64,000 bases of DNA from Paragordius varius (GCA_964247055.1 OZ176051.1:8432001-8496000), one strand, 5' to 3'; shown: positions 7,528-55,041, counted from the first letter of the stretch. Notes: generated by a model not told the origin, from the letters alone. Numbers and translations are program-made.

Positions 7528-8701
7528 ATGCTGGAAAATAATTTTGATTGTAAAAAATGTGGACAAAATTTAAACTTAAAAACCTACGATTTGGATATAA
7601 TTCAAAAAACATCGTATGAAAATGTAGAGGTTTTTTATTATGGTATTTTATAGGTTTTTGAACATCTCATTGATATGGCCAAAGGATATATCGAGTTAGA
7701 ACACCCTCTTTGTGACGTTTTTTAATATAATTATAGAAGAAATGCCTTAATATTATAGAAAACTATCAGATAGAAAATTTGGAACTAATCGATAAAGAGA
7801 TCAATCATTATAAGAATCTTGAAAATATTTTAAATGTAAACGGTGGCTCGTTTAAAAAACATATTTTTACTACAGCCATAAATTTCAAGAAAGATAAAGT
7901 TTATTAATTTATATTTATGAGACAAAATTGGATTTAAAAAATAACGATATGGAATTAAATAAACGGTTAAATCAATTAAAAGTTTTGTATACTCAAGCTG
8001 ATAAAGAACATAAATTAGCGGTAGAGGAAAGTAATCGTATTCATGAATTGGAATCAGCGTATATAATTAATTTTTTTACCTATCATTGCTAATAAAAACT
8101 CGTATTTATGTCGTATAATATAAGTTACAAATCAATTTTTCCTTTAATGCAATTAGTGGATGTTTTGAAAACAATTATGGCTTTGTGATATTTTTTGGCT
8201 AATGGTTATCATTTTATGCTATTTTTTGAAAAGTATTATAAAAAATGATTTTACGTTTACGTTGTAAAATATTGTAAGGAGTTTTTACTTTAAACATTTT
8301 CTAAAATTTAAATATAAATGTTTTTATAAATATTGAAAATGTTTTATGAATATAGAGCTATCGAACAACACAACCGTTCATCCCTTGATAATCTTGTTGA
8401 ATCCGATAAAGACTTTACGTAAATTTTTAAATTTTTTTAATATTATGTTAAATTGTGCTATTAAAACTAAAAATGTGCCTTATGAGGTTGATGATTGATA
8501 TTACAAAATTGCTATCATATATTTTAAACTTGGTGTACATATGTCCTCCAAATTATAAACGAAATTTAATTAATAAATTAGTGAATTGGATACATACCAT
8601 TGTTTGCGATTCATATTTTGCATTTCAAATATTTTGGATTAGGTATAAATTATTTAAATTATTATAATGATAGCAGTTTACTGCGCTTTATATATATATA
8701 T

Positions 8702-8738
<37 letters not shown>

Positions 8739-11700
8739 GAAAAATTTCAAGATAAAATTTCCATAAGGTTTATTATTGTTTTGGCTCTATATGCATTGCA
8801 ATTAATATACCATTTACAATTCAAATTTACCCTTGAACAAATTAAAATCACCCTAAAACTATGTATTTTCGGGTTAATGAACAATATAAAATATATCTCT
8901 ATTGCTTCGTTTATCATATTTTCTGCATTACTTTAATTTTGAACAAAATTTCATTTTTTAAAAATATTAAAAAATATACGTAATTTTTAATTAAAAGCGT
9001 ATAATTTATTTTAAGGTGAATTTGAATTGTTCAAGGGTAACTTTGAAGTGTAAATCATATAATATATTTCTTTTTAGAAACAACAATCACCTAAATTACA
9101 TGAAATCTAAAGTTGCTAAATGGGATAATATTGACCCTATTAGTTTCGTCTTCAAAATAAGGTAATAAAAATATAAATTATTCGAAATTATATGTATAAA
9201 TGGCTTCTTGTAATTGTTTGGTTAATGTTTTAGTTCTTTTGAAAAAATGGTTTCATGATTTAGATTTTGAGTCTTTTAACCTTATATACTGCATTATTTT
9301 TATTTCCAATTTATGTCGCATTTCTTTACAATTATTACTAACACCGCAAACAATTATTATTAAACATAAAAAAATATTTTGTTGCCATAAATAAAATGAG
9401 AAACTTTGTAAAAAAGCGTTATTATATATATCGAATAAAAAGATTTGCGAACTTTAGAAACCCAAAACCGTTTTTATGAAATTGTTCCAAAAAAACACTT
9501 ATTTTTTCAGTCCAGCCTTTTTTCTAACTTTTTTTCAAAAAAACGGTGTTTTCATCTTGATATCTTTAATCACCTTTTTAATAATATGTAGTTTTAACCC
9601 GCAGTTCGGCTGTATAAATTCGTATCGTATGGGTCGATTATCAAAATCACACTCAACCCAAAATAATGAGAATTGTTTGCAGGATGGAAATGTCCCTTGG
9701 TCTGAAATTAATTTGGCTTGGGGTCAAACTGCTCTACTCCTACACGTATTAGCCCGTAAATGTCAATACGAATTTAAACGGTATCATTGTTAATACACAG
9801 AATTGCTTTTTATTCCAAATTTTTTTTTAGAATGACCCTTAACTAAATCTTATTGATTATTTGCATTTTTACGATTATTATTTAACTAAACAATAAAATA
9901 TATGTTTAATTATATAAATATCTGTAGAATATACTTAAAGAAAAAATGATAAATAATAAGAATAGCAATAACCATATAAAGGAAAATCTGTTGAATGTTT
10001 TAATTTAATGAAAATTTGCAGTACAAATACAAATTTTTAAGGCCTAATTTTATATTATTGTTTCACTTAACTTCCTTATACAATATGCATTTAAATGCTG
10101 TCTTATTCATACTATAGTTGATCAATTCGCAACACAGTAGTGTATAGAAAAAAAACAACAAAATATTCACTAAAATAAACAAAGTAATGTAAGATAGGAA
10201 AAACTTTTTTATTTAACACTTTGTCGCTTTTCCCATACACTACTGTGTTGCCAAAATAATTCAACTATAATGTGAATAAGCCAGCATTAAAATGCATAAT
10301 ATAGATACCATTTTTACACCCATGAATGTGATAATTAAAAACATTGTGTTATCATAAACGCAAATTATGTTCTTTTAGTTGGAAACTAATTTTGTTGGGC
10401 CAAAATTCAGAAATTCAACAACAATTACCACATAATCCTGGTAAACCTTGTGAAGCAACTAAAACTAAATCATCTAATGAAGGCGAAAAACAAAACGAGA
10501 ATCAAGAATGTGGTCAAACTTACCCCCTATATTATTCTGGACGCGGTTTTAAACTTTTTGGTGATACCCGATTTGATTTAGGCATGACAGCTTTTTCTGA
10601 TTGTATGGTAGAGGTGTGTTTATATAAAATATTACTGTTTTTGTGACCACTTATCAAAATTCTAATCATTGTATTTAAGAATATTTAGGGTTGAACATCT
10701 CCATATATTTGTTTTAAGAGTCTTCGTTTGATTTATTAATGGAGAAGAAAAATAAATTTAACAGAAAAGATATGCTTACTATACCATTTGCAATTCAAGA
10801 CTTACACACCCCAAGTTGGTCTTTGAACACTTCAAAGCGGTCCTAAATTTTTTTAAGGTTGGATTTATCTTTAACTTTTGCATTTATTTATTATATTTTT
10901 AACCTAATTCTCTAAATTTTTATATATTATTCAAAAAATAAAATTTTTTATTCAAAAACAACCTTTTTTGCTAACTTTTGCAAATATAACAACATTATTA
11001 ACTCGTAAATGTTTTGAAGGGAAAATTGTAATAACCCAGAAAACTTATATTTTTTTAATTACATGTTAAAATATTATTGAAATTCATGTATTTTTTAAAT
11101 TAATTAAGATATACGGTTTATGAATGATTAAAAATTGATAATGATTTAGAATTTATGTTAAATAAACGAAATAGGTTAACAATGATAAAAGAGATGAATG
11201 ATACACGATTTTATTCATAAAAGTTAAAAAAAAACTAAAAGTCAAAGGACCAACTCGAAGTTTTCAAGACCAACTTGAAATGTTCAAGGACCAACTTAAA
11301 GTTGTTTAAGGACTGACTTGAAGTGCAAATGGTATATTATGTTCATTTTCAATATTTATATTACAAAATTCTACCCATAAAGTTAAACCGAACTGTAAAT
11401 TAGATGAGATGTATAGTGTCAAATACCGAACTTTATTACCTTTGGAATTTATATTTTTGAGTAAATTAAACAAAACCTCATTACAAATTCGTATCGTCTT
11501 TGTGTAATGTCTAGCCATTGTATCCGTGTCTGTAATATTTGCGATCCCAGGCGTTATCATCAATGTTGGCAACACTTAAATCATTATTTATTGTTTTTTC
11601 CCAGTTAAATGTTGGTCTACCCCTGCGATTGTTACCTTCGGGATGTAGGGATAAATTTTATTTGTCCAAATATCTAATTCAATTTTTAATCACATATTAT

Positions 11701-12133
11701 ATCAAATATTTAATTAATTAATTCTCTCTATGCAAATATTTTTTAGTTATCGGAAGAATTACAAAAGCGAGACCCATCTTTTAATTTGCCATATCGCATA
11801 GAAAACGGCCGTTTTCTAGAACCAGTTAACACGGGTACCTCTCAAACCACTGTTTTAGTTTATTCTATCAAGTATCACATTTTTATGATCCCTCTCTATT
11901 ATATTTTATAAATATTTCCACAATATAGAAAATTTAAAATTGATAAAACAACCTATCTAGAGTCAATTTTATGCTTTTTACGTAAATTTAGCCGTTATAT
12001 TAGCTAATTATATTGATATTCAATTTTGTTTGTTTTTAGGGCACAATTCAACTCGGAAGAAAATTGGACTAAAGCTTTACGATACATGTTAAAGAATATG
12101 CAATGCTTACAGAGTTATGTCACGAATATGTGA
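7528..12133 (+). CDS. BECN1: Beclin-1 / ATG6 / VPS30 (class III PI3K complex subunit)
   Basis: Exons 7528-7629, 7654-7716, 7740-7898, 7922-8058, [8356-8418 and 8487-8642 uncertain], 9592-9780, 10379-10613, 11747-11871, 12040-12133. Motifs [93 protein letters not shown] match the Beclin-1 BARA and coiled-coil domains. Splice phases are consistent for the 3' exons. Confidence 0.95.
8689..8737. repeat. (TA)n microsatellite in a BECN1 intron
   Basis: Direct reading. Confidence 0.95.
8817..9052. mobile_element. Palindromic MITE, family A (AGGGTGAATTTGAATTGTTCAAGGG arms)
   Basis: Imperfect inverted arms CAATTCAAATTTACCCTTGAACAA ... AAGGTGAATTTGAATTGTTCAAGGG; related copies at 22763-24305 and 62908-63170. 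Confidence 0.75.
10085..10297. mobile_element. Palindromic MITE, family B
   Basis: Arms ATGCATTTAAATGCTG..TTATTCA..TATAGTTGA / TCAACTATAA..TGAATAAGCCAGCATTAAAATGCAT; relatives at 19226, 27335, 37543. Confidence 0.75.
10795..11310. repeat. Degenerate inverted-arm element with about 22-bp tandem units (TCAAGGACCAACTT..) in a BECN1 intron
   Basis: Three TCAAG(G)ACCAACT units at about 11245-11300; reverse-complement AAGTTGGTCTTTGAA near 10815. Confidence 0.55.
11511..11650 (-). mobile_element. RTE-clade non-LTR retrotransposon 3' fragment, antisense in a BECN1 intron
   Basis: Minus strand reads [24 protein letters not shown]...AWDRKYYR*, the typical RTE ORF C-terminus. Confidence 0.7.
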
Positions 12134-12718
12134 TACATACTATTTTAATTATATGATTAAATCTATAAATAAAATAATTTATTTATTGATTTATATGTTG
12201 GAAAAAAATCAAAAATTGATCATTTTTATTTTTTAAAAAATTATTAAATTAATAAAAAAAAGCTTTAGGATTGGGCGGTTATATTATTTAAACCCCAAAT
12301 ATTATCAAATATATTAATTGTTTGTCAGTGTGATTAATTAGCCAATTTAATTTAATAAGATTGATTCAATAATATATTAATTTATATTAGTCACGCAGGA
12401 TTATGAAATTAAAGTGAGTGTTATACATAGGATAAAAATTTGATCATTATTTACATATAATTATTTGAAAAAGGGAAATTTTTAACTTCAAATGCCTTTT
12501 TATATTGAAAAATATATCTTTCTGGTTACGTTGATCCTGATAAAATGTTAGCGCTAAAACTACCCAAAAATTGTCAAGCTAACTAAAAATATAACATTTT
12601 TTCTAATTTATTCTTGATAAATAAAATTTGTATTGAGCATTTTTCTGATATCTCTTTAGCGGCGTTATTTCTTATTTTTCTTTCTAATTCAGTCTTTAAA
12701 GTTCTAATATGTTAATGC

Positions 12719-13866
12719 TTAAATTAAGTTATCGGCAATCGGATTTGCATGAATAGTTATATTTTTGATATGGATATCTTCTATTGGTTTATGTTTTGGC
12801 GTTACTGGTACTTTTTCAAATTGATCTAACACATCGAAACCATCAATGACTCTAACAAATTAATTATGGTGAGAATGTTGTTTAAAACGTACATGTATTT
12901 AAATAAAGCCATTTATAGTGCTTTGTGATTTCAACTCAGACAAGATAAATATCGAATAACAAATAACAACTATAGAGACCATTCCGATAGATGTTAGAAA
13001 AGCTTAAATAAACCCATTTTAATTCAATTGTTTCATTTTAAAGTGTAAAATCGGGTTTAATAATCAATCATGGTTTTACAGGAAAGGTTGAAATGCATAT
13101 GCCAAAAAAATATTTTTTTAAATTGTGATATTCTAAAACTATTTTTGGTACATAGAACTTTTACCTTAAAAAAACTATAGAAACGGTCAATTTTTTACCA
13201 CAATGGAAAAAATGAAAATAAAAATCTAGTTGTTGACTTTACAAAAAATAAAGTTTTAATTTTTAAGACCCATATCCTTAAGGAATTGAGATTATTCAGA
13301 CAAAAGGAAAAGGGCTAAAAATATTTTTTTGAAAAGGCTAATCGATTGATTAATTCTATTATATATCTTATACATACAATTTTAAAATGTATAATTGTAT
13401 CTCGCTTATTTTACGATCCAAAACAATAAGAACTTTTACTTTTTATGGTTACCTTTTAACTTATGATATATTTATACCTGCCAAATATGGTGTATTTCAT
13501 ATCTAAATGCGTTTGCTTAGAGTATGTGATAAAAAATTGTGAGCCATTTGTATCAGGTCCCTTGTTAGCCATCGATACGATACCTCGGCTACTGTGTCTA
13601 AGGCCAAGATTGAATTCATCTGGAAAATTTTTGGTCCAAATGCTTTGGCCCCCCTTCCCTGTGCCTATAAAATATAAAATTTGTGTTTAGAATTTAATAA
13701 GTCTTTTGTCTGAAAAATATGATAACATAATGGATAAAAAAATTATAAATTAATTAGTTGGTTATATTATTTTAATTTTCAGATAGACTACTTATAACTT
13801 TTTTGTCATATATCGGTATTATAAAAAATGCAGTAAAACTGATTTTTTTTCTAAATCACCAAGACG

Positions 13867-13911
<45 letters not shown>

Positions 13912-14504
13912 TGATAAAAATATATGTTGAAGCTAAGTGCTTTTTAAGGCTCGTTAATTGAGAAGTTATATGATTATTTATTATTACTTAAAATGGAATT
14001 TTTAAGTAAAAATACATGAATAATCAAGTAAATAATTATTAATTTGAAATATATTTAGAATATGTTGATGATCCCAGATAAATTTTAAATTTGAATATCT
14101 TCAATCCTGATAAGGATTTACGAAAAAAACTTTTAAACTGGTTAAATATTTTTTTTCATAATATTTTTTCAATCTAGTTTTTTAAATGATGACAACTGGC
14201 AAAACACACCCCAAATATATTCTAATATAAAAATTAAATAGAAAATGATATATCATTATATTATTCTTATCTAATAATATTATTTTAATATAAAAATATC
14301 CATGAACCTGTTGGATCTCCAGTTTGAACCATGAAGCCTTTGATGTTACGATGAAATATACAATTATCATAATAGTTGCTGGCGCATAAAGCCAAAAAAT
14401 TCTATGATATTACAGATATAAAAAACTTCGCATGTTTTAGGGCATGCTTCACAGTTCAGTTCAATTTTTATGTCCCCAAGATCGGTGTGTAGCGTTACTG
14501 CCAT
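12719..14504 (-). CDS. PPIL3: Peptidyl-prolyl cis-trans isomerase-like 3 (spliceosome-associated cyclophilin), 163 aa
   Basis: Exons 14504-14427, 14401-14308, 13664-13478, 12851-12719 (492 nt, all phases consistent). Translation [26 protein letters not shown]|[31 protein letters not shown]|[46 protein letters not shown]|[35 protein letters not shown] is colinear with PPIL3. Confidence 0.97.
13870..13909. repeat. (TA)n microsatellite in PPIL3 intron 2
   Basis: Direct reading. Confidence 0.95.
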
Positions 14505-14605
14505 GTGAAAATTTAAATTTTTGCCATCATATGATGTGGATTCATGGATAAAAAAGTGAAAAAAGGAAAACCACTCCTAAAAAATTTTTTGGTTCCTTAG
14601 TAAAT
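14505..14605. promoter_or_regulatory. Putative bidirectional promoter / 5' UTR region between PPIL3 and the L7Ae-family gene
   Basis: Inferred from divergent start codons about 100 bp apart (14504 on -, 14606 on +); no specific motif identified. Confidence 0.5.
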
Positions 14606-15150
14606 ATGGTGTAATTATTTATTTTAGTATAAGACTTAAACAAGAAAAAGATGTAGATGCCCTTTTATTAAGGTAAATTATATTTAATTTTAAGTTATTT
14701 TACCAAAAAATTGTCACAAACCCCAAAGGATAAGAAGTTTGATAGGACAATAAGTTTAGGGATTTATATATAGGCATAAAGGAAGTTTTTAAACACTTGT
14801 ATAAGGATCCAACCATCAAGCTAGTTTTTATTGATGAGCAAAACTCCCAATCGTCACCTCTCTTTTCTTATATATCGCATGCCTCTCAAACTTTACCTTT
14901 TGTTATTTACCCAATTAAAAACATAATGAGCAAGTTTGCTTTTTCTAAATGTTTGGGATTTGCCATTAAAAATTCCGAAGATACGGATACTCTGAAACTA
15001 TTAGAGGCAATGTTTACTAAACTTCCATGTGTGACAAAAACTGATATCACTCAATCTATTGGTAGACAATCGTATCCGACAATTAAGGCTAATAATTCTG
15101 TGTGCGAAGTTATATTAGGCCTTCAATCTCCTGGTTGTATACCCCTTTGA
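14606..15150 (+). CDS. L7Ae-family RNA-binding protein, RPP38 (RNase P/MRP p38)-like, about 161 aa
   Basis: Model exons 14606-14610, 14628-14672, 14695-14753, 14774-15150 (5' exons uncertain). RTISIKEVFKHLYKDPTIKLVFID...SYISHAS..LPFVIYP...FAFSKCLGFAIK...MFTKLP aligns by eye with the RPP38 L7Ae core (IGVNEVTRAL..LLLVLVC..SHLIQLS..VPACQVP..GLKCVLALAFK..IIPRVP). Confidence 0.65.
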
Positions 15151-21460: not shown

Positions 21461-22830
21461 AAAAAGACACGTACGAAAATGGCGAGCTTTTCGGAAGAAC
21501 AAATGCCGAAAACCTAGATATATTATTTATGATAAAATGCCAAATCTGATGGTTTTTAAAGTGGAAACCACTGGAAGAAATGTCTAGCCCTGTCATTATT
21601 ATCCTAAAAAACAGTCCAAAGTAAACCGTAGCGTCCGAAATCGAACACAGCTAATTTAACAGAAATCGTAAATCAAACAATTTTGAATGTCACTAACATC
21701 ACATGAAGGGTTTCTCTCTTTTAATACCCTAATAGTTTGGTCTAATACACGTAAGGCAATTCATTACCTAGAGCCAATAACCCATTAAGACATGAGTTTT
21801 TATTTCAATTTTCAGTATTGTTGGACTTTATAATTTAATTATTTTTTAAGTAATAAATTAAATATTAAATTAATATATTTTAAGATAAATATTTGCGAAA
21901 TCTAAGCAAATTCGATAAATTAAATTCTTTATTGAAATATTGGCACAATATAACAAGCCATCAAACATAGCTTTTGTTTATTAAGCTGTGCCCTATCGCG
22001 TGTCGCTGTGCTTAGTCCAAATCAGGTGACAAATGGCTTCGCGGGCGGCATTTTCGACTCAAAAAGTTTGGCGGAACGCATGCTTAAGGATTTAATAAAA
22101 CAATTATTTGTATTTCAAACACGTGAAATAAGTTACCACGAACGGATTATTATCTGCAATCTTTGCGAATTCGTTTCAAATTTGAAAGGACTTATTCAAA
22201 TTTAATTTGTTATAGAAATATCAATTTTACAAAAATTTTTTAGATAGCCATTTTTACAGATTATAGAATGGCCCACTTTTGGTATTTTCATTTTGAAAAT
22301 ATTTCGGATGGCTAAAACTATTCTAACTTAGTTTGCCAAAAACGACGGGGCTAACGAGGGAATTTAAAATAATGGCTTAACCATGATTTGCACATCAATA
22401 AATGAATTTATCAATTATTCCGATTGAATGGGTGCTTCTAAGCCACATTCTACCCTTATAATAGTCTATAAGAGTCAGTAGAAATCAGGTGCCTCCTCAA
22501 TTTTTTTATTTATTCCAAAAATGCCTTTTCAAAATTTTAGAGGTTTTAGCGCAACCAAAATATACAACTACATAATGCGACTGGCTCTACGTTTTCTTTT
22601 ACCCGAAGGCTAAATTCATAGTAATATAAGGATCAGTGCATTTAAAAAATATTGTAGGTTTTGCGATTTCTGATATATTGCTGTCATAATTTTTAATCTA
22701 CCATGGTCATTAAAAAATATTTAATTTTTTAGTATGGAAATTATCAGACAGGTACTTCTACATCAAATTCACCCTTAAACAATTCAAATTCACCCTCAAA
22801 TAATTTTTTTAAGATTAAATACCTAAATTT

Positions 22831-23295
22831 GGAACTCGTCGGTCATAAGATTTCTAACCAAACTTGCCATCCTGAAGGCGATGATATACCTCGTGACAAT
22901 TTATGGGTCCGAATCATGGATATGCAAATCCATTGACAAAGCCCGCATAAACTCTTTAAATGTGGTGCTTTCGGAAAATATTGAGAATCTCCTGGAAAGC
23001 TCCCATCTCCAATTCTTATATTCTCAACCTCATCAAACCCGAACGATTTAATAATCTTCAAACAGCTAAAATATCTGGGTCATATCCTGCGATCCGACTA
23101 GCTAGTAAAAAGTATACTCTTTGGGTTGGTAGATGGCACCCGCAGAAGGGGCCGACCCAAAAAGCGGTGGATCGTCATGCTTAAATCAATAAAAAACCAA
23201 ACTGAGAGAATCACATGATCGTCAAAAATGGAGAACATTAATTAATGAGAAAGCCAAGAGTCACTACATGACTGACTAGCTTATAACACACACAC
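22831..23295 (+). mobile_element. RTE-clade LINE 3' fragment, BovB-like
   Basis: TKLAILKAMIYLVTIYGSESW..., WCFRKILRISWKAPISNSYIL, RRGRPKKRWI, DRQKWRTLINEKAKSHYMTD*, followed by an (AC)n tail. Confidence 0.8.
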
Positions 23296-35020: not shown

Positions 35021-35940
35021 CCAGGTCTTATTATATGTTTTTACCGGTTTTGTGATAAAGAACTTGTAATTTTGAAAGAAAAGCACTATTTGTTGTATTA
35101 AAAATATGGTGCATCGTCTGCACATTCACCCTATCTCACGTAATATATGAATGCCCTGCCGGAAAAACTAATTAACTTTTGCGGTATTAAGCCATTTTCT
35201 AACGTCGAGATTATTTGATTGCACAAGTTATATGGCGCAAGGTCAGGAGAGTTGAGAGGGTACGAAAGAATTTCCCATTGAAATAATTTCAAGGTGTCTT
35301 TTATTAGTTTTGCTGTGTCATTGTCATCTAGCAGAATCTGTTTTCCGCCCAATTCTGGTTATTATACAGTTTCCCGGGTTTTAAAAGTTCCAAATAAACA
35401 GTATGACTTTGTTCCCACCAGACACGGGCTGCTTCTTGCCAAAGGGATTTAGTATTGGTGTTAATAGACCAGCTTGATACAAGTCACTTTGGAATTTTCA
35501 ATTTTCCATTCATTGAAATTGTGTGAAACCCAGTTTGTTAGTCATTCCCGTTGTTCGTAGACATCTATTGATTGTTTTTGATTAACTGACTTGCTTCTGC
35601 CAATTTTAAAATTTAAGTTGGGTCATCCATCATTTAATAACTCACACACTTTAGTGTCTCTTCAGTTGTGTGGTCTACGAGGCACATTCTTTCACATGTA
35701 ATCACAATTTTATGTTTCACATGTGTTAATCGATAGAGCATGTTACCCATATGTTTCTGCCAACAAACAATAACTTTAAATAATTCTTTTGATGGCAGTG
35801 CTTGTCACAAATGTTCTTTTCAGGCAAAAAATTCGACATTATTACTGAAGGATAAAAAAACGCGGTGGTTTTTGGCGAACTCAACTTGCCTTTGTTTGTC
35901 GTTTGATGTCAGACGAAAAAAAGATCTGTATTAAATTGAC
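35021..35940 (-). mobile_element. mariner transposon remnant (Mos1/mauritiana-like), pseudogenised
   Basis: Minus strand: MSNF..., ETYG*HALSINTCE, CVWWEQ..LELLKPGETV, LLDDN..AKLIKDTL..FQWEILSYPLNSPDLAP. One TA|CCAGGT terminus at 35019-35026. Confidence 0.85.
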
Positions 35941-39248: not shown

Positions 39249-42200
39249 TTAATCTGGTGTTTTATGATGAATTAATGTTCCCATTTTAACTGGATTTTGT
39301 GGTTGTTTTTTGGTCTTTTTATTACTTTCAAACTCATGATATTCCGGAACTCCATTTTCAGAATCGCCGATTTTTGATTTCGATTCCATTAAATTACTTG
39401 AACCGTTAGATTGGAAATTGGTTATCATATTATCTTTTTTACCATCTACAACATATACAATCTTTTTACGCGGATTGCCATCCAATATTTCATTGTCGCT
39501 CTGGGTAAACTCTCTTTTTGATTCGTCAGATGTGACAAACTTACAATCATTGTCTGATACACTATCAATGGCTGATAGGGGTTTGGAGTCGTCTGAAAAG
39601 TGATTGTTGCCATTGAAATGATGGGTGTTTTTGATAGTCTCTCTGTTTTTCTGCATATTATGATTTTTCGAATTGTTTTCATACATTTGGTTGGAATTAT
39701 TTCCCTCGGAATATTTATCGCCATTAAAATCATTGCTGATATGGTTGTTGAGTGCTAGATTTGAATGATTATGAGTTGGAGCGGAAAAATTATTGACACT
39801 GTTTTCTTGTAAACCATAATGCGAACCATCAATTGTGCTATATATATTTTCTTCGGGAAGGAGGGAAGATGTTTTATTCATACAATCAGATGGTGCCTTA
39901 TCTGTTTTATCATGCATAAAATTGTTGTTTGGTTCATCATATATGATTGGGACGCTATAATTACTTTCCGTACCAAATCCACTCAAACCCAAAACAGACG
40001 AATTTAGACTGCAGCGAGAATCGCTTAATTCACTTGGTCGATAGTAGGAGGAAATGGAACTTGCGTTTAAATTATCATTACCATTTGGTAGGTTATTATT
40101 AATCTTTGTGCTAAACGAATTCAAAGATGTCGTTTCATTATTTGAGTTTCGAATTAAATTGTTTAAGTATGGTTGTTGAACCGTTTTAACAGTTAATGGT
40201 TTTTCAGGGTGAGTGCTCAAATTTTCTTTGCCTGACCACCCAGAATATTGTTTGGTATAAGAGGCAGATTTTTTATTTTGCTTGGCTAACGCCGCTTCAG
40301 CGGCTATTTGTCTTTGAAGGTTAGCAAATTCCTTCCAATAAGTTCCTTTAGTTACATTATTGCTTGCATTTGAGGCCCGCGCACCGACAACCTTACTATA
40401 CACGTTCGAAAAATTATTTTTACCATTTAGGTTTTCAACATCTCCCTTTAATGTTTTCGTGCTGCTACTCATATACTTATTATTGATATGGTTTGATATG
40501 TTATTATTGTTTGATGTTCTGATGGGGATTTTACTTGGACTAGGAAATCCGGTTTCTGCAGAAGCGAGAGTTTGAGTGCTGTAAGAACTAGCAGACGCTA
40601 ATTTAGGCAAAGGTGGGGCTTGGGGTGCTATCAAAAGTTTTTGATTTTCATTATTCAAATTTTTATCGTTGAGATGACTCGAAGCATTGAGTTGGTTTAA
40701 TGATGAGGTGTCATAGTTGATGTCCTCCTTCGAACATCCATTTTGATAATTATGGCCAATGGATACATTGTTCAAATCGTGCCCTACATAAGACTGGCTT
40801 TCCATTTTTGATTGACCGCATTTCATTTCTGTTAGAGGGTTGTAGGATGGGGGAGGTGACACAACATTCAAGGCCCTTGTACTACCAGTTTTCATATCAC
40901 TTTGTTTATATGCATTTAAAGTTGCGGATTCCTGGTTTTGCCAAAAGGCTTTAGGCCCTAAATTCGTATTTTTGTTGGGCAGAGTCGTCGTTGGTAAGAT
41001 ATTAGATTGTTTATTATCATTATTGTTAAAGGACACATCATTGCCAATATCTTGTGAATGGATAGAACATGCTGGTTTCTCATATATGTATGAATTTGCC
41101 TGTTGCTCTTTATCGCTTTCGATATTGTTGGGTACGTGTATATGGTCATATATACGATTAATTTTATCTTTCAAATTTATAATTGTCGCCTGGGTGGGAC
41201 TCATAGTTAAAGCCCTTAGAGTAGCGGGATCATGCACTTTGGCAATCATTTCTTGAGCAGGACTATGAAAACCGTTCATTTCCACGGTTGAAACAATTTG
41301 TTCAGCGGTGACGGATAATTCTTGTTTTTTATTATTTTCTTTAACATCTAAGTCGCCGTTTATTCCCTCTTGTCCATATTTCCATGATAGGTTATTGCAT
41401 GATTCATAGTGATCATTGTTGTAATGATTATTCTGAGGAGCAGTGTCAGCAATATTATTCGTACAATTTAACAAATTATTCTGTGAACTTAGTGGCGACA
41501 TCTCTTTGATAGGACTCAAATTTCCAGACACGGGTGACATAATGGGAGATCGTATGGAGGAAAGCGTGTTAGGTTGTTGACCTGCTTTAATAAACTTTCG
41601 AACTGGTGGTAATGGTATTTGACTGTTAGAGCCTGTAATTCCCTCATTTGCTGATAAAAGAGGCGATTGGGAATGGCTATGACTGCTACGAACCGAAGAA
41701 AGATGTTGGTTGATATCTTGCTGTTGATCTTCAATAATTTTCTCGAATTTATCACGCTTTCCTAAAACATTTCTAATGCCAGAGGGGTTAGGAGAGTCGT
41801 TCTACACATACATATTAAAGTCAAAGAAAAATATTGATATAAGGCTCTATAAGACACAAAATAATTGTTATAAAAAACTTAATTTCCATTTTTGTTTGGT
41901 ATATTAATGAAAAACCTCATCAGCCGGCCTAGAAGCAGATTCTGACACTAAAATTGCTCTGTTAATACTTTGGTTAAGGTAGGAATCTGAACGGGTTGAC
42001 ATGGTAGAAATACGACCACTAGACACGCTTTTCTAATTTAACGATATTAAGAGATTTTTTAAAACTTAATTGAATTAGATTAATCTTGAAGTGGATATTA
42101 GTATGAAAATTTTTTGTTAGATGCAGAAAAATCATTTTGTTTATTAGTATATTGTTACTCTTGTGAAAAGATATACCATGATTATTTATAAAGCACATGC

Positions 42201-45200
42201 AACATTTATTACGAATTTCGGCATTCAAATTATATTAATAAATATTATAGAATTACAATCACTATCTATACATTATGGTATTAAAAAATCAAAAAAAATT
42301 ACATTTTAAAACCCAACCCTCTTCCCATACAAAATTATTGCAAATAATATTACTCTAAATGTCTATAAAATCAAACATTATTTGGTAAATAAATATTTTA
42401 GTTTTTAATTTGTCTGTCCAAAATTATTTTGGCAAAATCATTAATATGTATATATTAGCAAACTATGTATACATTGTCATTTGCACAATCCTTTTTATCC
42501 ATTTTTTCGGAAAGAATATCATTGTCTGTTGTGTGATGTTGGAATATATCATTGAGATTTAAAGGGAGTTTCGACGATGCATAAACATTCGAATTCGATG
42601 GTGTTAAAGTGTAATTTCGTTTTCGTTTTTCGGATATTGTTAGAGACTTTTTCGCATTATTATCTTTATGGTGTGCTCGATGATCCTCCTTACCATTATT
42701 ACATTCTAAGTTATTAACAAAGATATTTTCTCGATAGCTGAGAATATGAGAAGTTGAGGAAGGATGACCATTTGTCAATCCATTAGTTTTTTCTGTTTCA
42801 GTTGTTACATAATTAACTTTGATACTTTGTCTATCAACATTGGCATGATCAGTCGTCATCTTTGGAGTCATTTTGACGCGTTCAACTTTTATTTCATAGG
42901 GTTGTTTCCTATGTACTTCCATGTGAATCAGAGAATTCCCAATAACAGGGGACGATATATTCGTGCCATTAGTTACCAGGTTTTGGTTGTTCAATAGTTT
43001 TTGGCCTTTTAACGAAGTTTTTACAGATACTTCTGGGCTTGTCCGATTGGATCTTAGCGAAAAATTATTGGGAGATTCACTGGGTGACGTGATATAACTT
43101 TGGCTACCACAAGCCATATTGTAATTACTGCTGAAGGTATCATCTTCACAATAGTCTTTTTTTCGTGAACTGCTTAAGTTCAGCTCGCTTGTTTGAGATG
43201 GAGCGGTTTGATAATGTCTATCTATGTGATGGTTATAATTATTGTCACAAATGGTTTCAGGCTTTTCTGGCAAAGTTAGCAAAGGTAATCGCATTGATTT
43301 AATACGTGGATCCTTTACATGATTCGATGCAGACCTACTAGCTTCAATCGGGATCTTAGATCCTATATCGTCCCTACTAGAGCGCCAATTGTCAAGGGAC
43401 CGGCTCATTATATCAATATTTTCGTCATGGTTTATTGTTCCTACGGATTTTTTTCGATTTACATAACTAAATGTATATGGTATATGCGATTTCTGTTGTT
43501 CATATAAGGAGGTCAGTTTATCAAGGGGTTCATCGATTACATTCATACAGCTGCGTGATATATGATCCAACTTTGTTTTGTTACAATTTTCCCAGACATT
43601 GTTTTTTGAGGTGGCTGGATTGCCATTCAAAATTTGTTTGGAGGATTGATAGGTGGAGCGATTGGATAGCTAAAAATTTTGTAATGGCAAAAGCAAAAAC
43701 ATTATTATAAGCATAAAGCGTTAAAAATATAATAAAATTTTGTTAATTTTTGTAACATCCCTTATCAAGCAATAAAACTCTCTATAAAAATAAGCGTGTG
43801 TATAAACTGCAGTGATATTTCGTTTATAAAGCATTTTTGTGCAAAAATTAATCATACTAAGCTGGAATTAATGCCAAAAACTTTAGTCAATTTGGATAGA
43901 GTAAAAATCAAATTTATAAAGAATATTTACCCAATTATATTTAAAATTTATTTTTTACGTTTTGTCTTTATAATTTTATAATTTAGCTGTGGATACCTCA
44001 TCATACCCATTTTTATTATGTTGTAAGCTTAAGATACGGCTAAAAATTGTTTTTAACAAGATCCGTGCATTATTATAAAATGATTAATTTATAGACAAAA
44101 CATGCAAAACATACAAATTACCATTGATGTTAAACTTTGGTTTGAGGGTGAACGTGAGAGTTTTTGGGTCCTGTTTCGTATATATTCTTCAATATCTGTA
44201 ATTTCCTCACGGAGTGCACTAAAATAGAAATATATAATATACAGTTTAGAGTTTTTCTTTTCCCTTTTTTATTAAGGGTAAGCACTTAAATTGTATCCGG
44301 ACATGTAAAGGCTTTAACACTCGCCTGCCCAGGGCAGACAGTGAGGATGAAATTGCGTAGTTTCGGGGTTCAAACTCTGGCACGCAGTGTAAGAGTCTGG
44401 CGTTTTACGTACTATATTATCACGCCTTCACTAAAATAGAAATAATACTAATCAAAAATGCGTTTACTTAGGGCCATGATGAAGCGTTACTCAGTCTCAA
44501 ATTTTACTATGTGAGTCATAAGAAAGAGCCACAAAATACATGTCCTAAATCCATATCCTCCATTTTTTGCCTTATGTTTCTAAAAAAACCCAGTAACAAA
44601 AAAGATCTTAATACCATCTGAAACTTTAAGCCATAGAACGTTTGAGCTAATCGAGCAGTTCACTTGAGTTATTTTTATGCCTACTCTTCAAATTATTTTT
44701 AAGATGATTGATTAAAAATCGGGGGTAATCCTGCATAAATGAAATGAAAATGGCCGCAATCAGGAGATGCACAATATAGCGTTTAATAACAAATAATTGA
44801 TAAATTGTTTTTTGACAATCATTATATTGGATAGAGAAGGTGATATAGGCTGGTCAGATCACTACCTAACGGTCTTAAATAGATGACAGAGTAATCAAAA
44901 TATGAGCCTTTTTATGTTTAAAAGAGTTATGGAAAAAATTCAATTTTGATTGCTTTTAATTCAGATAAATAGGTAGAATCTAAGAAGGAAATATCTTTTT
45001 AACTAGCAAAAATTAACGGAAAGGAACTTGCAATAAAAGCTTCCAGAATTCGACAACGATCATTACATTATAAAACAGACAAATTTAGGTTTTTTACTAT
45101 AATTTAATGAGTAGGGCAAAAATATGTTAAAAGATAAAAAAATTAGCGGTATGTTATCAATGAGTATGCGAAAAAGGGAATAAAACCAATGTTTACAAAA

Positions 45201-48200
45201 TAAATAATTTTACTCTTTGATGGTTAAGATAACTTTGTTTAACTTTCGGCATCGGTTCAAGTTGTTTCGCAATTTTTCCGGTTCAATTTTGATGAATCTT
45301 TAGTTGCAAAAAATTACAAATTCAAATATAATATAAAATATAATATATTTGTAAAAGTTGAGTACAAAAATTTAAACAATATATTTAACTGATTTCTTAA
45401 ACAAAAAAAGCCAAATATCAATTAAATTAAACAGGTTAAATTAAGTTTAATAAACAAATTATATGACATTCCAAAAATGAGTTATTACAAAATGTTACAT
45501 TTGTCGTTCCTTGTTGAAATTTATTTGATTCATGCCATCCGCCGGTGAATTCCGACCACAATCAATTCCAAAAATCAATTTTCTTTCAAGTTTGGTGTAT
45601 CGAGCTATTTTTTTAAAAAAATTTAAAAATTAATAAAAGTTATATGAAATATAATTTCTGTTTTTACAATTACATTTTAAATCAGTGGCAGCCCTGTTGG
45701 CAAAGTTGAGTGCAATGGCGATCGAATCTGCATCCATCTTTTTGTATTCATAATTTACATGTTCCAAATCGTTTTTAAATTCTTCGATTGAAATTTCAAT
45801 GTCACTAATCAATCAATACAATAAAATATATTTTTTGGTAAAAATTTTGTAATTTTTAGCTTTATAATTCGTTTAAATCATATATATAAATGGTAACTAG
45901 AGATAAGAGATGACAGGGCGTTTTAAAAAATTTATTTTTAATAATCCATTTTCATAAAACGCCAAATTTTTTCCATTTATATTTTAAAAGTTCCAAAATG
46001 CTTAATCAATCGTTTTTAAGGTAAATGACATCTATAAATTTTATAGGCCAGATATAATATTTTTATAATTAAAAAAGCTAGTAACAAACCATAACTGTGG
46101 GGATTTTTGAAGACAATTAAAAAAAAGTTGGGAATTACTGCCTGAAAATATTTAGTTTATTAAATTATTGGATACTTATATCAAAACTTAAATTAGATAT
46201 TAGTTCGAAATACTTTTCAAAAGTATTATATAATTCAATACAGTTTTTATGATTTAATGTAAGGCTATTACAAGTTTTTTGAATATTAATTATAAAGTTA
46301 ACCATTTATATAAATTTATTCACTTTACTTTAAATTCCTCCTTAAAATTTCAAATTATATTAAAACACTCACCCTCATAATCACTTACCTAATAATAAAT
46401 TGTGTGTTTTGGGCTAATGTAATCTTACAAATGTGTTTTTGCCCAGAAATACAAATTTAATTGAAAGCTAAATTTGCAAAATTCAAAGGGTATATAAATA
46501 AATTAGAAAGATGTTTAAAAGTATAAAATTGAAGTAAAAAGCTTTAAACTGTCGTAAATAACACATTTATTTGCGTTCGTTTTATATTTTCCAGTTTAAT
46601 CCAATATTTATGAAACACTCCTTAAAATAGTAATTATACTTTAGCGTTTTTTCCAGTTTAGCCATATCATGGCGATAATCTTCGATGTGTTTGAGAAGAA
46701 AAGCAACCTGTCCATCAAAATCCGACATATTTCCTTCATGATCGGTTCCAATATGATCAAAATTATTTTCGAAAACCGCGAAATTGGCTAATGATTGGGA
46801 AATCTTGGGAATAGCATATGACGGCACATATTGGCACACAATCTAATCAAAATTAAAATTAATGTTTATATATGTGCAATTAATTATGTTATTATTTAGG
46901 TTGGGGGGTATAGACCGGTAAAGAAATACTAACAGTTTAAAGGTAACTTTCGCGATCATTAGCCATAATTACTTAAATTTATTTTATACATAAACAAAAA
47001 ATATTTTTTTAAAAAAAGCCCCTTAAGATTTCCAAATTTAATTGGTTTTTTACATTTTGTCAGATTGTTTGTCACATTTTTATAAAAACATTTGTTTTTC
47101 ACATGATAAAAATATGTTTAAAAAAATCATTGATTCATAAAAAGCAGTCATAGTCACATGATTAACACGTCGCTAAATTTTCATTTTTTTGTATGCCATT
47201 TTTGGGTAGTTTTCGACCACAAAAGCTTAAATTTAGATGATCCTAGCGTTTAAATTCAATTAGCTCCAGAAAACTATTGGAACGAATAGCTGATATTATT
47301 AATTAATAACAAAACTTTGCTGGTAAAAGCTTTCCAAATTATTTATATTTTTAAACCCTTTAGAATTATTTGTGTGTTGATAGACGATTTTAAAATTAAA
47401 GAAAAAAATGGCGGTGAATATAATGATTTTTATACAATTTTCACACGCCTAAAAGGCTAAACATGTTATAAAATTGGCCCAATGTTCAAAATATGATTGA
47501 TATTTTAATTAAAAATGACTTGGGGTACCACCCCAAAGGGTAATTAAGTATTAATGTAAATAAAAGTTAAACAAAAATAAAATGTTTCATTTTTTTATAT
47601 ATTTATATAAAATTTGTTCTATATGCCAAACAATTTTATTTTCTTAACTACAATATAAATTTACATTCAATCTTTGTTTCGTTTGATGCATCAAATCCTG
47701 CATATCGTAATTGTAATTTCGAGTACTTTTCTTCAAAAGTTTGAAATCGAATTTAAGTTGCAAGGCTTTATCATGGAGAGTCTTAAGGATCAAAAAGTTG
47801 TTTGGGGCCAATTCATCTAATTAATATCATATAGGTAAATATAGGACTAAAAATATTTGAATAACTTTAACAGTAAATTATCAAATCAGTTAATAACTCA
47901 GATAGATTTTAATTCGAAATACTAGAATTTATTATTATTAAACATTTATTTAAGCATATTTTATTTAAAAGTGTTTAGAATAGAACAGTCACCCGCAAAA
48001 TTATAAAATCATATAAATTACCTCCAAAGTCGACGCTTGTACCCCGTAAAACATTTTGAACCATGGCTGTTAGGGCATTAAGTCGTTTTTCCATTGTCTC
48101 CATTTTCATTCTGAATTTCGCAAACATGTCATAATAAAATTAAAAGATCGTAAGACATTTTTATATAAAAACAGCCAAGTTTTAGAGAGCCTGATTTTTA

Positions 48201-51200
48201 AATTATATTGGTTTTTCATTAAATAGCTTAATTATTATTTTTCAGATTATAGAAACAATTTATATATCGCTAAACCTGAAAAAATTACCAAATATCTGAT
48301 ACCAGAATAGGCAGAATTATATTTTTTGTGATATGTTTCAAATTTAACAAATACTACTGTTTACTGCTAAGTTGATCTGATTTGCCTATCTCCATTTTAA
48401 ACTACTAGCAAATTAAATCCGAATATGGAATATATTATTTAATTTTTAGACGGTTAATAAATTTTATCATTACTTGGAGTCCGAAGATTCCCAACATATG
48501 TCATTGTTAGAAGTTCGATAAATATCATCTTTGCCAGGTGTATTGAATAAATTGCGACTTTCTATTACATAACAAAAATTTAATAAGCAAGATTGCGAAA
48601 AATAATATTTAATTTATTTTTTAACATATTTCATTTGTCCATTTGCACTTACTTAATTTAGCTTCCATCATATCTAAAATCTGTTTTTGTTTGTTGAATT
48701 TGGTGGACATGTTAGCAATATTTTCTTTGGAACTCAGCACTAATTGACCGGCCAACGGGCGTTCAGAAGTATAACGGGTATCAGTACTGTTTATCATACT
48801 ATTACTCAATTTTCTGTCCATATGATAGGGAGATTTGACAATTTGACTAGCATACATAGGGGCGAATTTGTTTATACCATTGTTCCGCTCCTAAATAATT
48901 TTATATATGGTAGATTTATATAAAATTGGCACATATTTTAAGGGTAACTTTCCATTCTTAATTTTATTTACTAATTCATTAAAATGTAACAAATGCAAAT
49001 TCTGGGTTCACAAACAATACTACAAAATTACCGGCGAACTAATTGAACAAATAAACTTTAGTTGTAACTTTTAAAAACAATAATCCAACTAAAATGCGCT
49101 CGACATAAATAAGTGACTATCGACGATAATTTAATCGAAAAATTAGACCAGTTTACCTATCTTGGAGATGTCATAGAGGTCATATAACTGGAGCACTAAA
49201 ACGAATTCAACAAGCGTGGGGTAAAGTTAACTCTCTAAAATTTGTCCTCAAAAATAAAAATGTATCTAACAATAATAAATGGCTAATATACAAAGCAGGT
49301 GTCAGACCAGCTCTTACTTACGCCACCGAAACATGGATCCTAACAAGGCAAATCTTGACAAAATGATAAATACATAAAACAAAATAATTAAAGTTCTGAC
49401 AACAATATCCTTCTTAAACACAAAAATGACACAATAGAAAAGTTTATACAGAAAATCAGACTCAAATACTTGGGCCACATTGAAAGAAGACAAACCCACC
49501 CACTCCAAACCATTTAACACATATAACCTCTGGAAACTACCGCAAAGGACGCCCGACACATTCCTGGAACGAGAATATAAAATATGACATAAAAATATCA
49601 AACCTCGACATTACCAAATGTCTAGACAATGATCTTTGGAATAATATTGCTAGTGGAAATCTTCAATGAAGATAAAAAGCTTTCATCAATCAAGTATTTA
49701 TTTATATTATAGTATAAATTAAAATTAAACCCAGAAAATGTTAAAACTAAACCATACATTTTTAATTGATATATATATATATATATACATAAAATCTCTA
49801 CTCCTTATTTTGGAGCACAATGAGTTATATTTTGATAAATTCAAGGTTTACACAATGTCGTGGCCTTTTTGAAGAATATTTGTATTTTTAACGTTTTATC
49901 TAATTTTTACTTTTATCCTACTCATCAATATTACGTTAATATTATGATTAAAAATTGAAAAAAAACCTTATTGGCACTGTTGGGAGATTGGTTCGTAGGC
50001 AAAATTTTCTTGTACTTCCGACAATCATATTCGGGTTCACTGTAATACGATGCATCTATGAGTTTTGTTGGAGTTTTAGAATAGCTATTTGTCTGTGTCT
50101 CCTTTCCTCCGCTTGTCATGCTATTTTTGTGAAAACTGTTTTCTCGGTAGCCATCACGCTGCAACATATTTTGATTCATAGTACTTGAACAGATTGAAGA
50201 TTTTTCACTCAACATATCTTGATCGGTGTTTGTGATGGTAGAATCAATGGTTGTATCATAGCTTGTAGCTTTTGAATGGGTTCGACTTAAACTGTCAACA
50301 TATGATGGGTAGTTAGTTTCAGTCTGATCCATTTCTGAAGAATGGTGATATGATAATGAAGTGGAGTGAACGGAATCCGGGGTATAGTTTCTCGTATCTA
50401 CAACGGTATCCTTGTCATTTGTATTGTGGTGGACAAGTTTAAGGACAGCTTTGTTGGTTATGTCACTAAAATAGGGGCATTAAAAAATTATCTTAAAATT
50501 TTTCCTTAAAAACGAAATTATTTTAACCAAATAAAACAAGATTAAGATATGTTTTACCTAACATCTTCAAGTTCATAAAAGATTTCTCTGGGATTGTCCA
50601 TATCTTGAATGTAAATGCAACAGTTATAACGCAAAAAATGCATGGTAAATTGGTTGGGGAAGATTTGCATATACGCTTTTCGGATATCATCTAAAGTTGT
50701 CAAATTCTTTTCTGGGGGCGCGAAAGAGTACCGTTTCGTTTCATTTTTATGTTTTAAGTATACTATAGTGGCTATTTTAACACATTAAAAACATAGAGTA
50801 AAATAAATGGACTCGCATAGGTAATGTTGAGTTCGACCGATTATCATCAATATTTTATTTGTTTGTACCTCAGATTCCCTTAATCATTCAAAATTTTGAA
50901 CATATGGTTATAATGTGAATAAGAAATATTAGTGTAAATTGTGAAAACTTTATTTCCATTTTGCTGTTTATATAAAGACACAAACTTAATTTAAAGAAAT
51001 AATTTTCTTTTAAGCTGCTTAACATATGCATTTATTAGTTAAAACCCTAAAAAACTTCATACACACAGTTTTACTAACTACTATTTTTGCACCGCTCAAA
51101 AATTACTTAAACCTCTGCACAAATGCCTTACATTTTGGTTCTTGGAGCCATGAACCTCTCCTATCAAGTGAATGGGAATAAACAGAATTCCTAACAAAAC

Positions 51201-54200
51201 TATTGGGACTTCTATTTGTTGGTGCCAAAGCTGTCCGGGTAGATTCAATTTTTCGATCATCCGCATCATTGAAACGGCGTGGCGCAATATTTATAGTTCG
51301 GTATTTGTTTTGGTAATGCCTTGTATCCATTTCGGACATTGCGCTAATGTCATCAGTGCCATCTTCAAAACGCCCTTTTGTGTTGCTTTCATGCTTGTAC
51401 TGGTTGGCTAATATTTTACAGACAAATTAGAGCGTATAAATTGGTTTTCTATCAATTATTTCTGAAATTTTTTTTGTAATATTAATCAACGGTTTCTCAG
51501 ATAATTTTTATATTTTGAAATAAACAAAATATTTATATACTTGCGAATGGTGATAAGGTATTTGGTGATGTTAGGATATTCATACTTATGCCTCGGCCTA
51601 AATCTTGATTCCGTTTTTGATTGGTATCCGAAAAATAATAAGATGAGGAAATGGGTGATTTTGCCGACAAATTAGTCTGTACAAATATAATGTAATATAA
51701 TTGACTATGTTCAAAATTAAGTTTTGCAAATTTGATTATGATTTACGGTTGCTTAGCGAAATTCACTTTTGTGTAAACGATTGACAAAATACTCGTGTAT
51801 CAACCAGTATTAATGCTCTTTTAAATCAGGGCAACTAAGAGAATACTGACGAAACATATTTATTTTGCTAAAATGCCTTAGGAAAATTATCAAATGACTT
51901 TAAGCCCGCGAGATTTTTGGGATGCAAAATGTTACGAGAACTAAGTAAAATTGATATTAAACAATTTGTCTAAGTAAGTTTAATCAACTAGCATATTAAA
52001 AAACACAGTGAGTGAATTTTGCAGTGCTATTTTATAAATTTAATATGTTTATTAATACCCATACAATCGAAAATAACCGAACGTTTTTTTTTATTCAAAA
52101 ATGCGGCCAGAGAAGCCATTTGTGTTAGATACGCCTAGTTTAGAGTATTCTTGTTTTAATTTTGATGATAATCATCATAAATATTATATTGTTAAACAAA
52201 TACTGGACAAGAACCGATGCAAAATATTACCTAGAAAAACACGCTGCTTTCCAAATTCAAGTTGCATCATTCGTTAAAACTTGTAAAAAATGTTTTACAA
52301 AAAAATAGTACCATTAATTTCGATGCGAAGAACCGATCACCTCGGTATTTTGTTTAATTCCAATACAAAAGAGAAGAATTATTAAATCAAAACTACTGAG
52401 CGATAAGAAAATGCGCCCTAAAGTTTTGCACTTTGATTAAAAAGCAAAGTATTGTAAGAAAGTGCTATATTGCTAGAAAGTTATTAATTATTGCCAAAAA
52501 GCATATGCGGCAAAGTGTTATTACTGCCTAATAATGTTAAAAAGAAAAAAAATAACTATAAGCCAATAACACTGTCTTTTTTGTATATGCTATTTGGCAA
52601 AAATTATAATTTCTAGCAATGTATACTCCTATTTTTTAAGTTATTTTAATTATATATATAATTAATAGGGCTTCTTCGTGCTTAAAAAGACCATTTTAAG
52701 GGTTTACAAAAGACAAACATAAAAAACAAATTATTATGGTTTTGATCTTGAGTTTTTAAAATATCTGTTTAATGTAATTTTTTGATATTTTTTAATAGCA
52801 ATTTACGTTAAAAATCGATACATTCTTACAACAGTATTGGTTTTATACATATTTATATACCGTAGGTCGTTCCACATATATTTCACGAAAGTTGCTTTGG
52901 TTATGATTATTCGTGTTGGCAGTAGCTGATTTGTTTGATAATCTCGGCGACTTTTCCATGGTTGGAATATGCGTTCCCAAATCATTAGATTCATTTTCTC
53001 TTTCTTGATATGACCTAAAAACTAAAGTATTTTCTCGTCGTAAAGGCGATGACATGGTTACATCGGGTTGTTCCATCGGCTTATTATTAACTTTTTTCGT
53101 TTCAAAGTAGTTACCTGTCTTTGATGAAGAATTGTTCCATGCAGAAGAAGTATTGTAATTTAATGAGCCTTTGCGCGGTATGATGTGATACATTTGTGGT
53201 TGAACCATTTTGGGTGGCGAAATTCGACTTAAATCACGATGTGAATGGGATAATTGAGGAGCCGTCATTATCCGTGCCCTAAGGGTGTTTGTCGGTGAAG
53301 TTGCTTGTTTTTCCTTTTTTTCTTTTTCACCCGACTGGGTGGGTGAAAAAGTGGTCGTCACATAAAAATTTTTCTTGGAAGGCCCTGTATCACTTTTATT
53401 GTTTTTATCCCCCATACTTATTTTATAACTCGAGGATGTGGAAGATGTTGCCGTTAATAATTTATTATATTTTTCATCCAATCTGTAAGATGGTTGATCG
53501 TTAGCTTTTTTGGTATTATCATGGTCTTTGTATGATTTTGTTGCATGATAATAATCGACTAGATTAGAGCAGTTGGAAGAATCAAATGGTGATCGATTGC
53601 TTGAACTTCTACGTTCATTTATACTGGTGGTAACAGCCGAAGGATTTTCCTTGTCATGCAGGAATGATTCATTGGTCAATTCTTTATCATAATGATCTAT
53701 GTAGGCTAGTTCGTCTCCACCATTTTGAAATTTTGTTTCAATGTTGTTGTGCTGTGATTGTCGAGTCCCGACTCCATATCGCTCACGAATATCCAAGGGT
53801 TCACACGAGCCTTGCTTAGGCACTATGTTTAACAATTTAACGCCCCCGCTTCGTTTTATGCGTTCGGTCACTTCTTTGTTATGGCTACTGTTATCCTTCG
53901 CATAGTTATCAGACTTTCCATGTCCAATATTCAATCTAGGCGACAATAAGCCATTCATATCTTCTACATGGTGTTGATCGTACTTATCACGTGAATGCGC
54001 TATTGAATGATGATTTCCATGTTTTTTCATATGGTCACGCCCCAAGCTTCCCCAACGCATTTTACTTAGGTTTAAATTCCTATTTTTAGATGTCATCATA
54101 TCCAATTGATTTTCACGTGAATCATAATGGTTATCATACCCATTATTGCTCTCATGAACATCGTCAGACGATAGTAATAATTTATCGTTTGGTTTCGCAT

Positions 54201-54997: not shown

Positions 54998-55041
<44 letters not shown>

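Follow-up and report, generated by a model that had tools for sequence, protein, structure and literature searches.

Probable GT-AG micro-introns of 23–25 nt in the BECN1 and PPIL3 genes of a likely horsehair worm

A window of 64,000 nucleotides (nt) from Paragordius varius (GCA_964247055.1, OZ176051.1:8432001-8496000; positions are counted from its first letter) was analysed for ultra-short introns, which had been proposed from the sequence alone in three genes between 7.5 and 15.2 kb. Four segments of 24, 23, 23 and 25 nt, three in the Beclin-1 gene (BECN1; 7528-12133, plus strand) and one in PPIL3 (14504-12719, minus strand), are best read as ordinary U2-type GT-AG introns of bilaterian ancestry that have shrunk here to about 23–26 nt. 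We put the probability of this reading at roughly 0.9. Exact removal of the four segments is needed for conserved, selectively maintained proteins, and their removal from the pre-mRNA is what we infer from the genomic sequence. The claim of three genes with ultra-short introns stands for BECN1 and PPIL3 and is unproven for the third, an unnamed open reading frame (ORF) gene (14544-15150, plus strand, start approximate), where the introns were proposed by frame-joining alone.

Both named genes were assigned by homology and modelled by spliced alignment. For BECN1, a spliced protein-to-genome aligner was guided by the beclin of Gordionus; it accepted introns from 15 nt upwards and penalised each of them equally, without a length term. 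With these unbiased settings the aligner itself chose 7630-7653, 7717-7739 and 7899-7921 plus six long introns. Exon 1 (7528-7629) comprises 34 codons with the first CxxC. It is followed by micro-intron 1 (7630-7653, 24 nt, phase 0, GTTTTTTA...ATAG), the length of which is divisible by three, yet the terminal TAG is an in-frame stop. Exon 2 (7654-7716; VF...PLC) measures 63 nt, as does the corresponding exon in Gordionus and Lingula. For micro-intron 2 (phase 0), forms of 20 and 23 nt had both been suggested. The 23-nt form (7717-7739) preserves the CxxC (C-D-K-C vs. C-H-E-C in Gordionus) and is retained, whereas the 20-nt form (7717-7736) would give CxxxC with one residue extra relative to Gordionus and was rejected. 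Exon 3 (7740-7898, from spliced alignment and intron map) precedes micro-intron 3 (7899-7921, 23 nt, phase 0). The later exons (7922-8058, 8356-8418, 9078-9161, 9592-9780, 10379-10613, 11747-11871 and 12040-12133) are separated by long introns of, in order, 297, 659, 430, 598, 1133 and 168 nt. After removal of all introns the coding sequence (CDS) comprises 1251 nt and encodes 416 amino acids (aa) free of stops. Pfam APG6 matches were obtained on three of the exons. Two additional GT..AG segments in BECN1 exons, 10441-10482 (42 nt) and 11835-11858 (24 nt), were skipped by the aligner. Both are in frame and stop-free; they could be optional micro-introns or lineage-specific insertions and were taken as the latter.

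In PPIL3, exon 1 (14427-14504, 26 codons) matches residues 1–26 of human PPIL3 (1xyh_A) with E=1.7e-8. Exon 2 spans 14308-14401, and its positions 14401-14309 match residues 27–57 of the same protein (29/31 identical, E=2e-16). Between them lies a micro-intron of 25 nt (14402-14426, phase 0, GTTTTTTATATCTGTAATATCATAG), which the aligner recovers exactly. The segment shifts the frame, and its exact excision joins residues 26 and 27. Pfam Pro_isomerase likewise runs over positions 2–26 on exon 1 and 27–57 on exon 2 with no gap, and its positions 68–126 and 126–158 fall on the remaining exons. Intron 2 (13665-14307, 643 nt), exon 3 (13478-13664), intron 3 (12852-13477, 626 nt) and exon 4 (12719-12851) complete the gene, all on the minus strand. 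The CDS is intact (492 nt, 163 aa).

In each of the four cases, excision joins exons that are contiguous in homologs, and each segment either is a non-multiple of three or carries an in-frame stop. The segments originally predicted at 7630-7653 and 7899-7921 in BECN1 and at 14426-14402 in PPIL3 are thereby upheld at their exact ends, the two in BECN1 also by the aligner's choice and by the orthologous intron positions described below.

The long introns of both genes contain repetitive DNA. The BECN1 introns include very high-copy repeats at 8688-9170 and 11264-11424, with summed contig depths in the thousands in low-coverage DNA runs and many joints between opposite strands, which suggests foldback elements or elements resembling miniature inverted-repeat transposable elements (MITEs). 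(AT)n microsatellites are located at 8680-8747 (BECN1 intron) and 13861-13920 (PPIL3 intron), and short-read contigs break at both.

For intron orthology, the exact beclin exon structures of Gordionus (L001, XP_065325256), Priapulus (L002) and Lingula (L003) were mapped together with that of the window. Micro-intron 1 shares its column and phase with intron 2 of Gordionus (38 nt) and with a Lingula intron of 387 nt. Micro-intron 2 does so with introns of Gordionus (38 nt), Priapulus (436 nt) and Lingula (480 nt). The counterparts of micro-intron 3 in Gordionus and Lingula measure 189 and 205 nt; it is off by 4 alignment columns from them, which is caused by gap placement, and TKL opens the next exon of the window and of Gordionus alike. 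In all three species that possess both flanking introns, the exon enclosed by micro-introns 1 and 2 or their counterparts measures 63 nt. The six long introns of the window also agree in column and phase with those of Gordionus, Priapulus and Lingula. Since other animals have longer introns, in the same phase, where the BECN1 segments lie, these segments would be ancient introns that have since shrunk.

BECN1 of Gordionus resembles that of the window in its intron positions and phases, in having short 5' followed by long 3' introns, and in the same 63-nt exon (exon 2 or 3). It differs in intron length, with 45, 38, 38 and 189 nt in Gordionus against 24, 23 and 23 nt in the window. The first Gordionus intron (45 nt) starts with GTTTTT and has no counterpart in the window. 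The flanks of Gordionus BECN1 showed no synteny with PPIL3. Among the RefSeq isoforms of Gordionus BECN1 (L001 3089-3319 and 3911-4652), intron 2 measures 38 or 44 nt depending on the 5' splice site used, and exon 7 (84 nt) is either included or skipped.

A library search with one conserved BECN1 exon returned beclins, by far the nearest being a 'beclin-1-like' protein (P0007/P0116) of Gordionus sp. m RMFG-2023 (Montseny horsehair worm). The window beclin matches Gordionus best (221 bits vs. 183 for the next), with an identity of 36% (BLASTP) or 41% (over tree alignment columns), and the two group with support of 100/99. They also have derived features in common, namely an N-terminal deletion and the motifs KW..IDPI..VF.I and AQFNSEENW. 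In a search with the C-terminal region, Gordionus was the sole match. The G+C content of the window (27%) compares with 26.93% published for G. montsenyensis. This species' own beclin was absent among the at least 120 matches listed for Gordionus beclin, of which the weakest scores above the window-to-Gordionus comparison. On these grounds the source is most probably a nematomorph (horsehair worm) and not Gordionus montsenyensis itself.

Short-read contigs of DNA runs were compared with the window, comprising X2-X4 (two samples, same organism label) and X5-X7 (three runs, other labels). Runs X1-X7 behave as DNA and keep the introns. In X2, X3 and X4 the contigs keep the PPIL3 micro-intron, lengthened to 26 nt by an additional T in a T-run and differing at two single-nucleotide polymorphisms. 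BECN1 micro-intron 1 is kept in the contigs of X6 and X7, with a T added after 7630 (25 nt) and 7642 G>A. The extra T in the two segments may be a real polymorphism or a homopolymer error of the assembly. The segments are real DNA, and their length is able to vary without harm to the frame.

Exon variants in the independent DNA runs were synonymous in 8/8 cases for PPIL3 (P=3e-6) and in 12/17 for BECN1 (P=6e-6). Variant sites occur on either side of the frame-shifting segments. The single variant in BECN1 exon 1 (Y20Y) and both variants in exon 2 (E37E and K44K) are synonymous. Read in the spliced frame, BECN1 and PPIL3 both evolve under purifying selection.

The four verified micro-introns are all GT..AG, in phase 0 and 80–87% A+T. 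Of the 12 introns of BECN1 and PPIL3, these four measure 23–25 nt, and the other eight 168–1133 nt. They are adjacent and clustered at the 5' end, occupying the first intron positions of their genes (introns 1–3 of BECN1, intron 1 of PPIL3). All four start with GTTT(T/A)TTA, a sequence that begins just one of the eight long introns. Of these eight, six start with GTA, and one, in PPIL3, with GTTC. TAAT is present in three of the four micro-introns, but is frequent in A+T-rich DNA, and there is no space for a pyrimidine tract.

Controls were run for these motifs. GT(N16-24)AG has 1678 start positions in the window, so the motif alone is uninformative and support comes from homology. The longer form GTTT(T/A)TTA...AG (18–26 nt) has 13 start sites in the window, of which just the four supported by homology are flanked by long open frames of sense-strand genes. 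When all 256 pairs of donor and acceptor dinucleotides were scored by spliced alignment, GT-AG obtained the top score in both BECN1 and PPIL3; several A+T-rich pairs score near it in BECN1.

Taken as introns, the four segments would have the following history and mode of removal. Ancestral introns would have shrunk at the first one to three positions of each gene, with the downstream ones staying at 170–1130 nt. The normal spliceosome would remove the micro-introns from the pre-mRNA via intron definition, with the branch A within roughly 8–16 nt of the AG and next to no polypyrimidine tract. For introns of this size, the U-rich start GTTT(T/A)TTA may serve as the functional 5' splice signal.

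Several results weigh against this account. Intron-position orthology covers the three BECN1 micro-introns and not the one in PPIL3, and the tree grouping of the window with Gordionus joins two long branches. The GT-AG score margins are small, and for PPIL3 there is a three-way tie with two slid versions of the same deletion. The GTTT(T/A)TTA motif is based on four introns, in which a convincing branch-point motif was sought and not found. RNA runs with the same species label show no splicing of the window: X8 gave no match, and X10 contains a different hairworm's transcript. In X10 a single RNA contig has a 35-nt match at 12041-12075; its beclin mRNA is closer to Gordionus than to the window and therefore comes from another hairworm. 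RNA and DNA filed publicly under this label seem to stem from different hairworm species. The 32-nt spliced junction of PPIL3 was absent from metagenome contigs.

The segments might instead be spurious insertions from assembly or sequencing; the window is one T off all compared DNA contigs in two homopolymer runs, and a long-read error is possible there. This is extremely improbable. In X2, X3, X4, X6 and X7 the contigs carry the segments complete and at their proper place; at most the lengths would be 25 and 26 nt, not 24 and 25 nt. It is hardly credible either that they are germline-limited DNA, eliminated from somatic genomes in a programmed manner like the internal eliminated sequences (IESs) of ciliates instead of being spliced from RNA. 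Their size is near that of the smallest Paramecium IESs, and removal at the RNA level is deduced from DNA, but the boundaries are GT..AG and not TA..TA, the BECN1 positions are orthologous to spliceosomal introns, and the joined form occurs in none of the contigs of the seven DNA runs. The BECN1 and PPIL3 loci could also be frameshifted pseudogenes with working copies elsewhere in the genome, and a paralog is possible in principle, given that the X10 contig encodes a different, Gordionus-like beclin. X8, from the same study as X10, however, has no match even on conserved PPIL3, so that another species is a better explanation than a paralog. Removal of the GT-AG segments gives a complete CDS in both genes, exon variants are overwhelmingly synonymous in the frames flanking each segment, and the supposed frameshifts lie exactly at ancient intron positions with GT..AG ends. 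We regard pseudogenes as very improbable.

A further alternative, raised with the original prediction as a spliceosome mode for micro-introns, accepts the segments as true introns and ascribes their removal to a lineage-specific variant of splicing, with altered 5' recognition of GTTT or an SPF45-like, U2AF-independent route. It would fit the contrast between the GTTT(T/A)TTA start of all four micro-introns and the GTA start of most long ones. GTTT(T/A)TTA pairs poorly with the canonical 5' end of U1. SPF45 is reported to replace U2AF at human introns with truncated pyrimidine tracts (PMC8363638). The sample is four introns, however; one short Gordionus intron also starts with GTTTTT, and a GTTC start occurs in a long PPIL3 intron of the window. 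Myxobolids and Dicyema combine tiny introns with conventional U2 small nuclear RNA (snRNA) and U2AF (PMC13644364). Since animal introns below 30 bp are known alongside this conventional equipment, special machinery need not be assumed. The Rfam scan, which covered the window alone, found no snRNA. A splicing variant is considered unlikely, and ordinary U2-type removal of shrunken ancestral introns is preferred.

The third gene was proposed with exons at 14544-14599, 14628-14672, 14695-14753 and 14774-15150 and introns at 14600-14627 (28 nt), 14673-14694 (22 nt) and 14754-14773 (20 nt), all on the plus strand and obtained by frame-joining only. The three introns are all GT..AG. It had been described as an L7Ae/RPP38-like housekeeping gene, which was not borne out. 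For its 124-aa terminal ORF a word-based homolog search was empty and Pfam gave no match at E<=10; no PDB match of the L7Ae/RPP38 family was obtained at E<=10; and the ESM atlas gave one weak lead, unrelated to L7Ae/RPP38. The AlphaFold2 (AF2) model was unusable, with a predicted local distance difference test (pLDDT) score of 45. Variants were synonymous in 3/9 cases (P=0.29), with no sign of purifying selection. By estimate, the 134-codon open stretch in this gene is improbable by chance in DNA of 27% G+C. In view of the missing homology and purifying selection, the 22- and 20-nt segments are frame-joining proposals only.

A 17-nt intron at 14611-14627 had been offered as a possibility for the same gene. 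It is contradicted by a common allele, 14611 G>T, in which the donor G is lost; this allele is the sole form in X2 and makes up about half of the depth in X3 and X4. Paths of start codons and GT-AG introns were enumerated for three alleles, and one simple single-intron model with a plausible ATG fits all of them. In this all-allele model, translation starts at ATG 14544 and introns of 28 nt (14600-14627), 22 nt and 20 nt are removed, which gives a lysine-rich protein of 178 aa. The 28-, 22- and 20-nt introns are plausible but unproven. X2-X4 all carry a 5-nt insertion (TAAAT) in the last codon (15145-15150), which changes the C-terminus.

PPIL3 and the third gene are arranged head-to-head, their start codons separated by about 40 nt (14505-14543), which is likely a bidirectional promoter for both. 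Elsewhere in the window, a chain of long open frames (850, 404, 673 and 213 aa, and others) extends over 39252-59176 on the minus strand. The frames are rich in N, S and low-complexity sequence and probably form a single large gene for a disordered protein. Pfam found no domain on this chain, hence no extra intron cases were obtained from there. Remnants resembling Tc1/mariner transposase and reverse transcriptase of elements without long terminal repeats (non-LTR), judged by eye only, are located at 35134-35358 (minus), 22733-23181 (plus) and 49130-49666 (plus). Scans of the whole window for tRNAs and with Rfam gave no match. G+C varies between 22 and 37% along the window and averages about 27%.

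The original prediction of ultra-short GT-AG introns beside kb-scale ones, in genes on which default gene finders would fail, agrees with the homology, intron orthology, intact frames and polymorphism reported here. By default, AUGUSTUS does not call introns below about 39 nt, and STAR reads gaps below 21 nt as deletions. Genes with micro-introns would break or vanish in annotation, which is relevant to the BUSCO score of 71.6% of G. montsenyensis and to published claims that hairworms have lost genes on a massive scale. On the wider, tentative reading given below, gene models broken by unrecognised micro-introns would inflate the reported 'rampant loss' of universal genes and contribute to low hairworm BUSCO scores.

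The same ancestral BECN1 introns are 387–480 nt long in a brachiopod; in hairworms they measure 38 nt (Gordionus) and 23–24 nt (window), so their shrinkage would be traceable inside one phylum. A single gene holds tiny and kb-scale introns next to each other, an arrangement that speaks against compaction as the cause; on the wider reading given below, extreme intron miniaturisation would not be tied to genome compaction. BECN1 and PPIL3 would offer a natural system for how the spliceosome handles about 23 nt.

The preprint on the G. montsenyensis genome, which gives a G+C content of 26.93% and the BUSCO score of 71.6%, never mentions introns, and neither exons nor splicing come up in a comparative preprint of 2024 on the genomes of four hairworms. 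Among 51 animal genomes, Hadjez et al. (Mol Biol Evol, September 2026, PMC13644364) found introns below 30 bp only in Myxobolidae and Dicyema japonicum; their text leaves nematomorphs unmentioned and predicts further tiny-intron lineages. The list of known tiny-intron lineages given with the original prediction includes dicyemids and lacks the myxobolid myxozoans. Tiny introns in hairworms are unreported in the literature searched, and on the present sequence a hairworm lineage would be the third in animals with introns below 30 bp and the first in Ecdysozoa. Only tentatively do we suggest the wider claim, namely a third, independent animal lineage with introns below 30 nt in Nematomorpha, in which a discrete, 5'-clustered class with a GTTT signal occurs beside kb-scale introns in a large, transposon-rich genome.

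The tiny introns of ciliates (about 25 nt in Paramecium, 15–16 nt in Stentor; PMC5014332, PMC13644364) belong to the same length class and are likewise non-multiples of three or contain a stop. Unlike the present lineage, ciliates are protists whose introns are virtually all tiny, and the genetic code differs in some of them. The microintrons of flatworms (Opisthorchis felineus, PMC6530080) are similar in their bimodal length distribution, in the adjacent, 5'-clustered position of the short class and in being under-called by annotation. Their lengths, however, show peaks at 37 and 90 bp, the former that of the short class, against 23–25 nt here (20–28 nt with the third gene); the short introns of Gordionus (38–45 nt) would fit the flatworm short class.

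Like the introns of myxobolids and Dicyema japonicum (Hadjez et al. 2026, PMC13644364; Lu et al. 2019, PMC6736024), the four segments are GT-AG, shorter than 30 nt and at conserved positions between conserved exons, and in both cases the lineages are parasitic and the introns have no space for a pyrimidine tract. In myxobolids and Dicyema the median of all introns is 22–27 bp and genomes are compact, whereas here only the 5'-most introns are tiny and the remaining ones measure 0.2–1.1 kb in a repeat-rich genome of 27% G+C. Their 5' signal is reduced to 'GTa', in contrast to GTTT(T/A)TTA in the small sample of four introns here. The phylum differs as well, the present lineage belonging to the Ecdysozoa.

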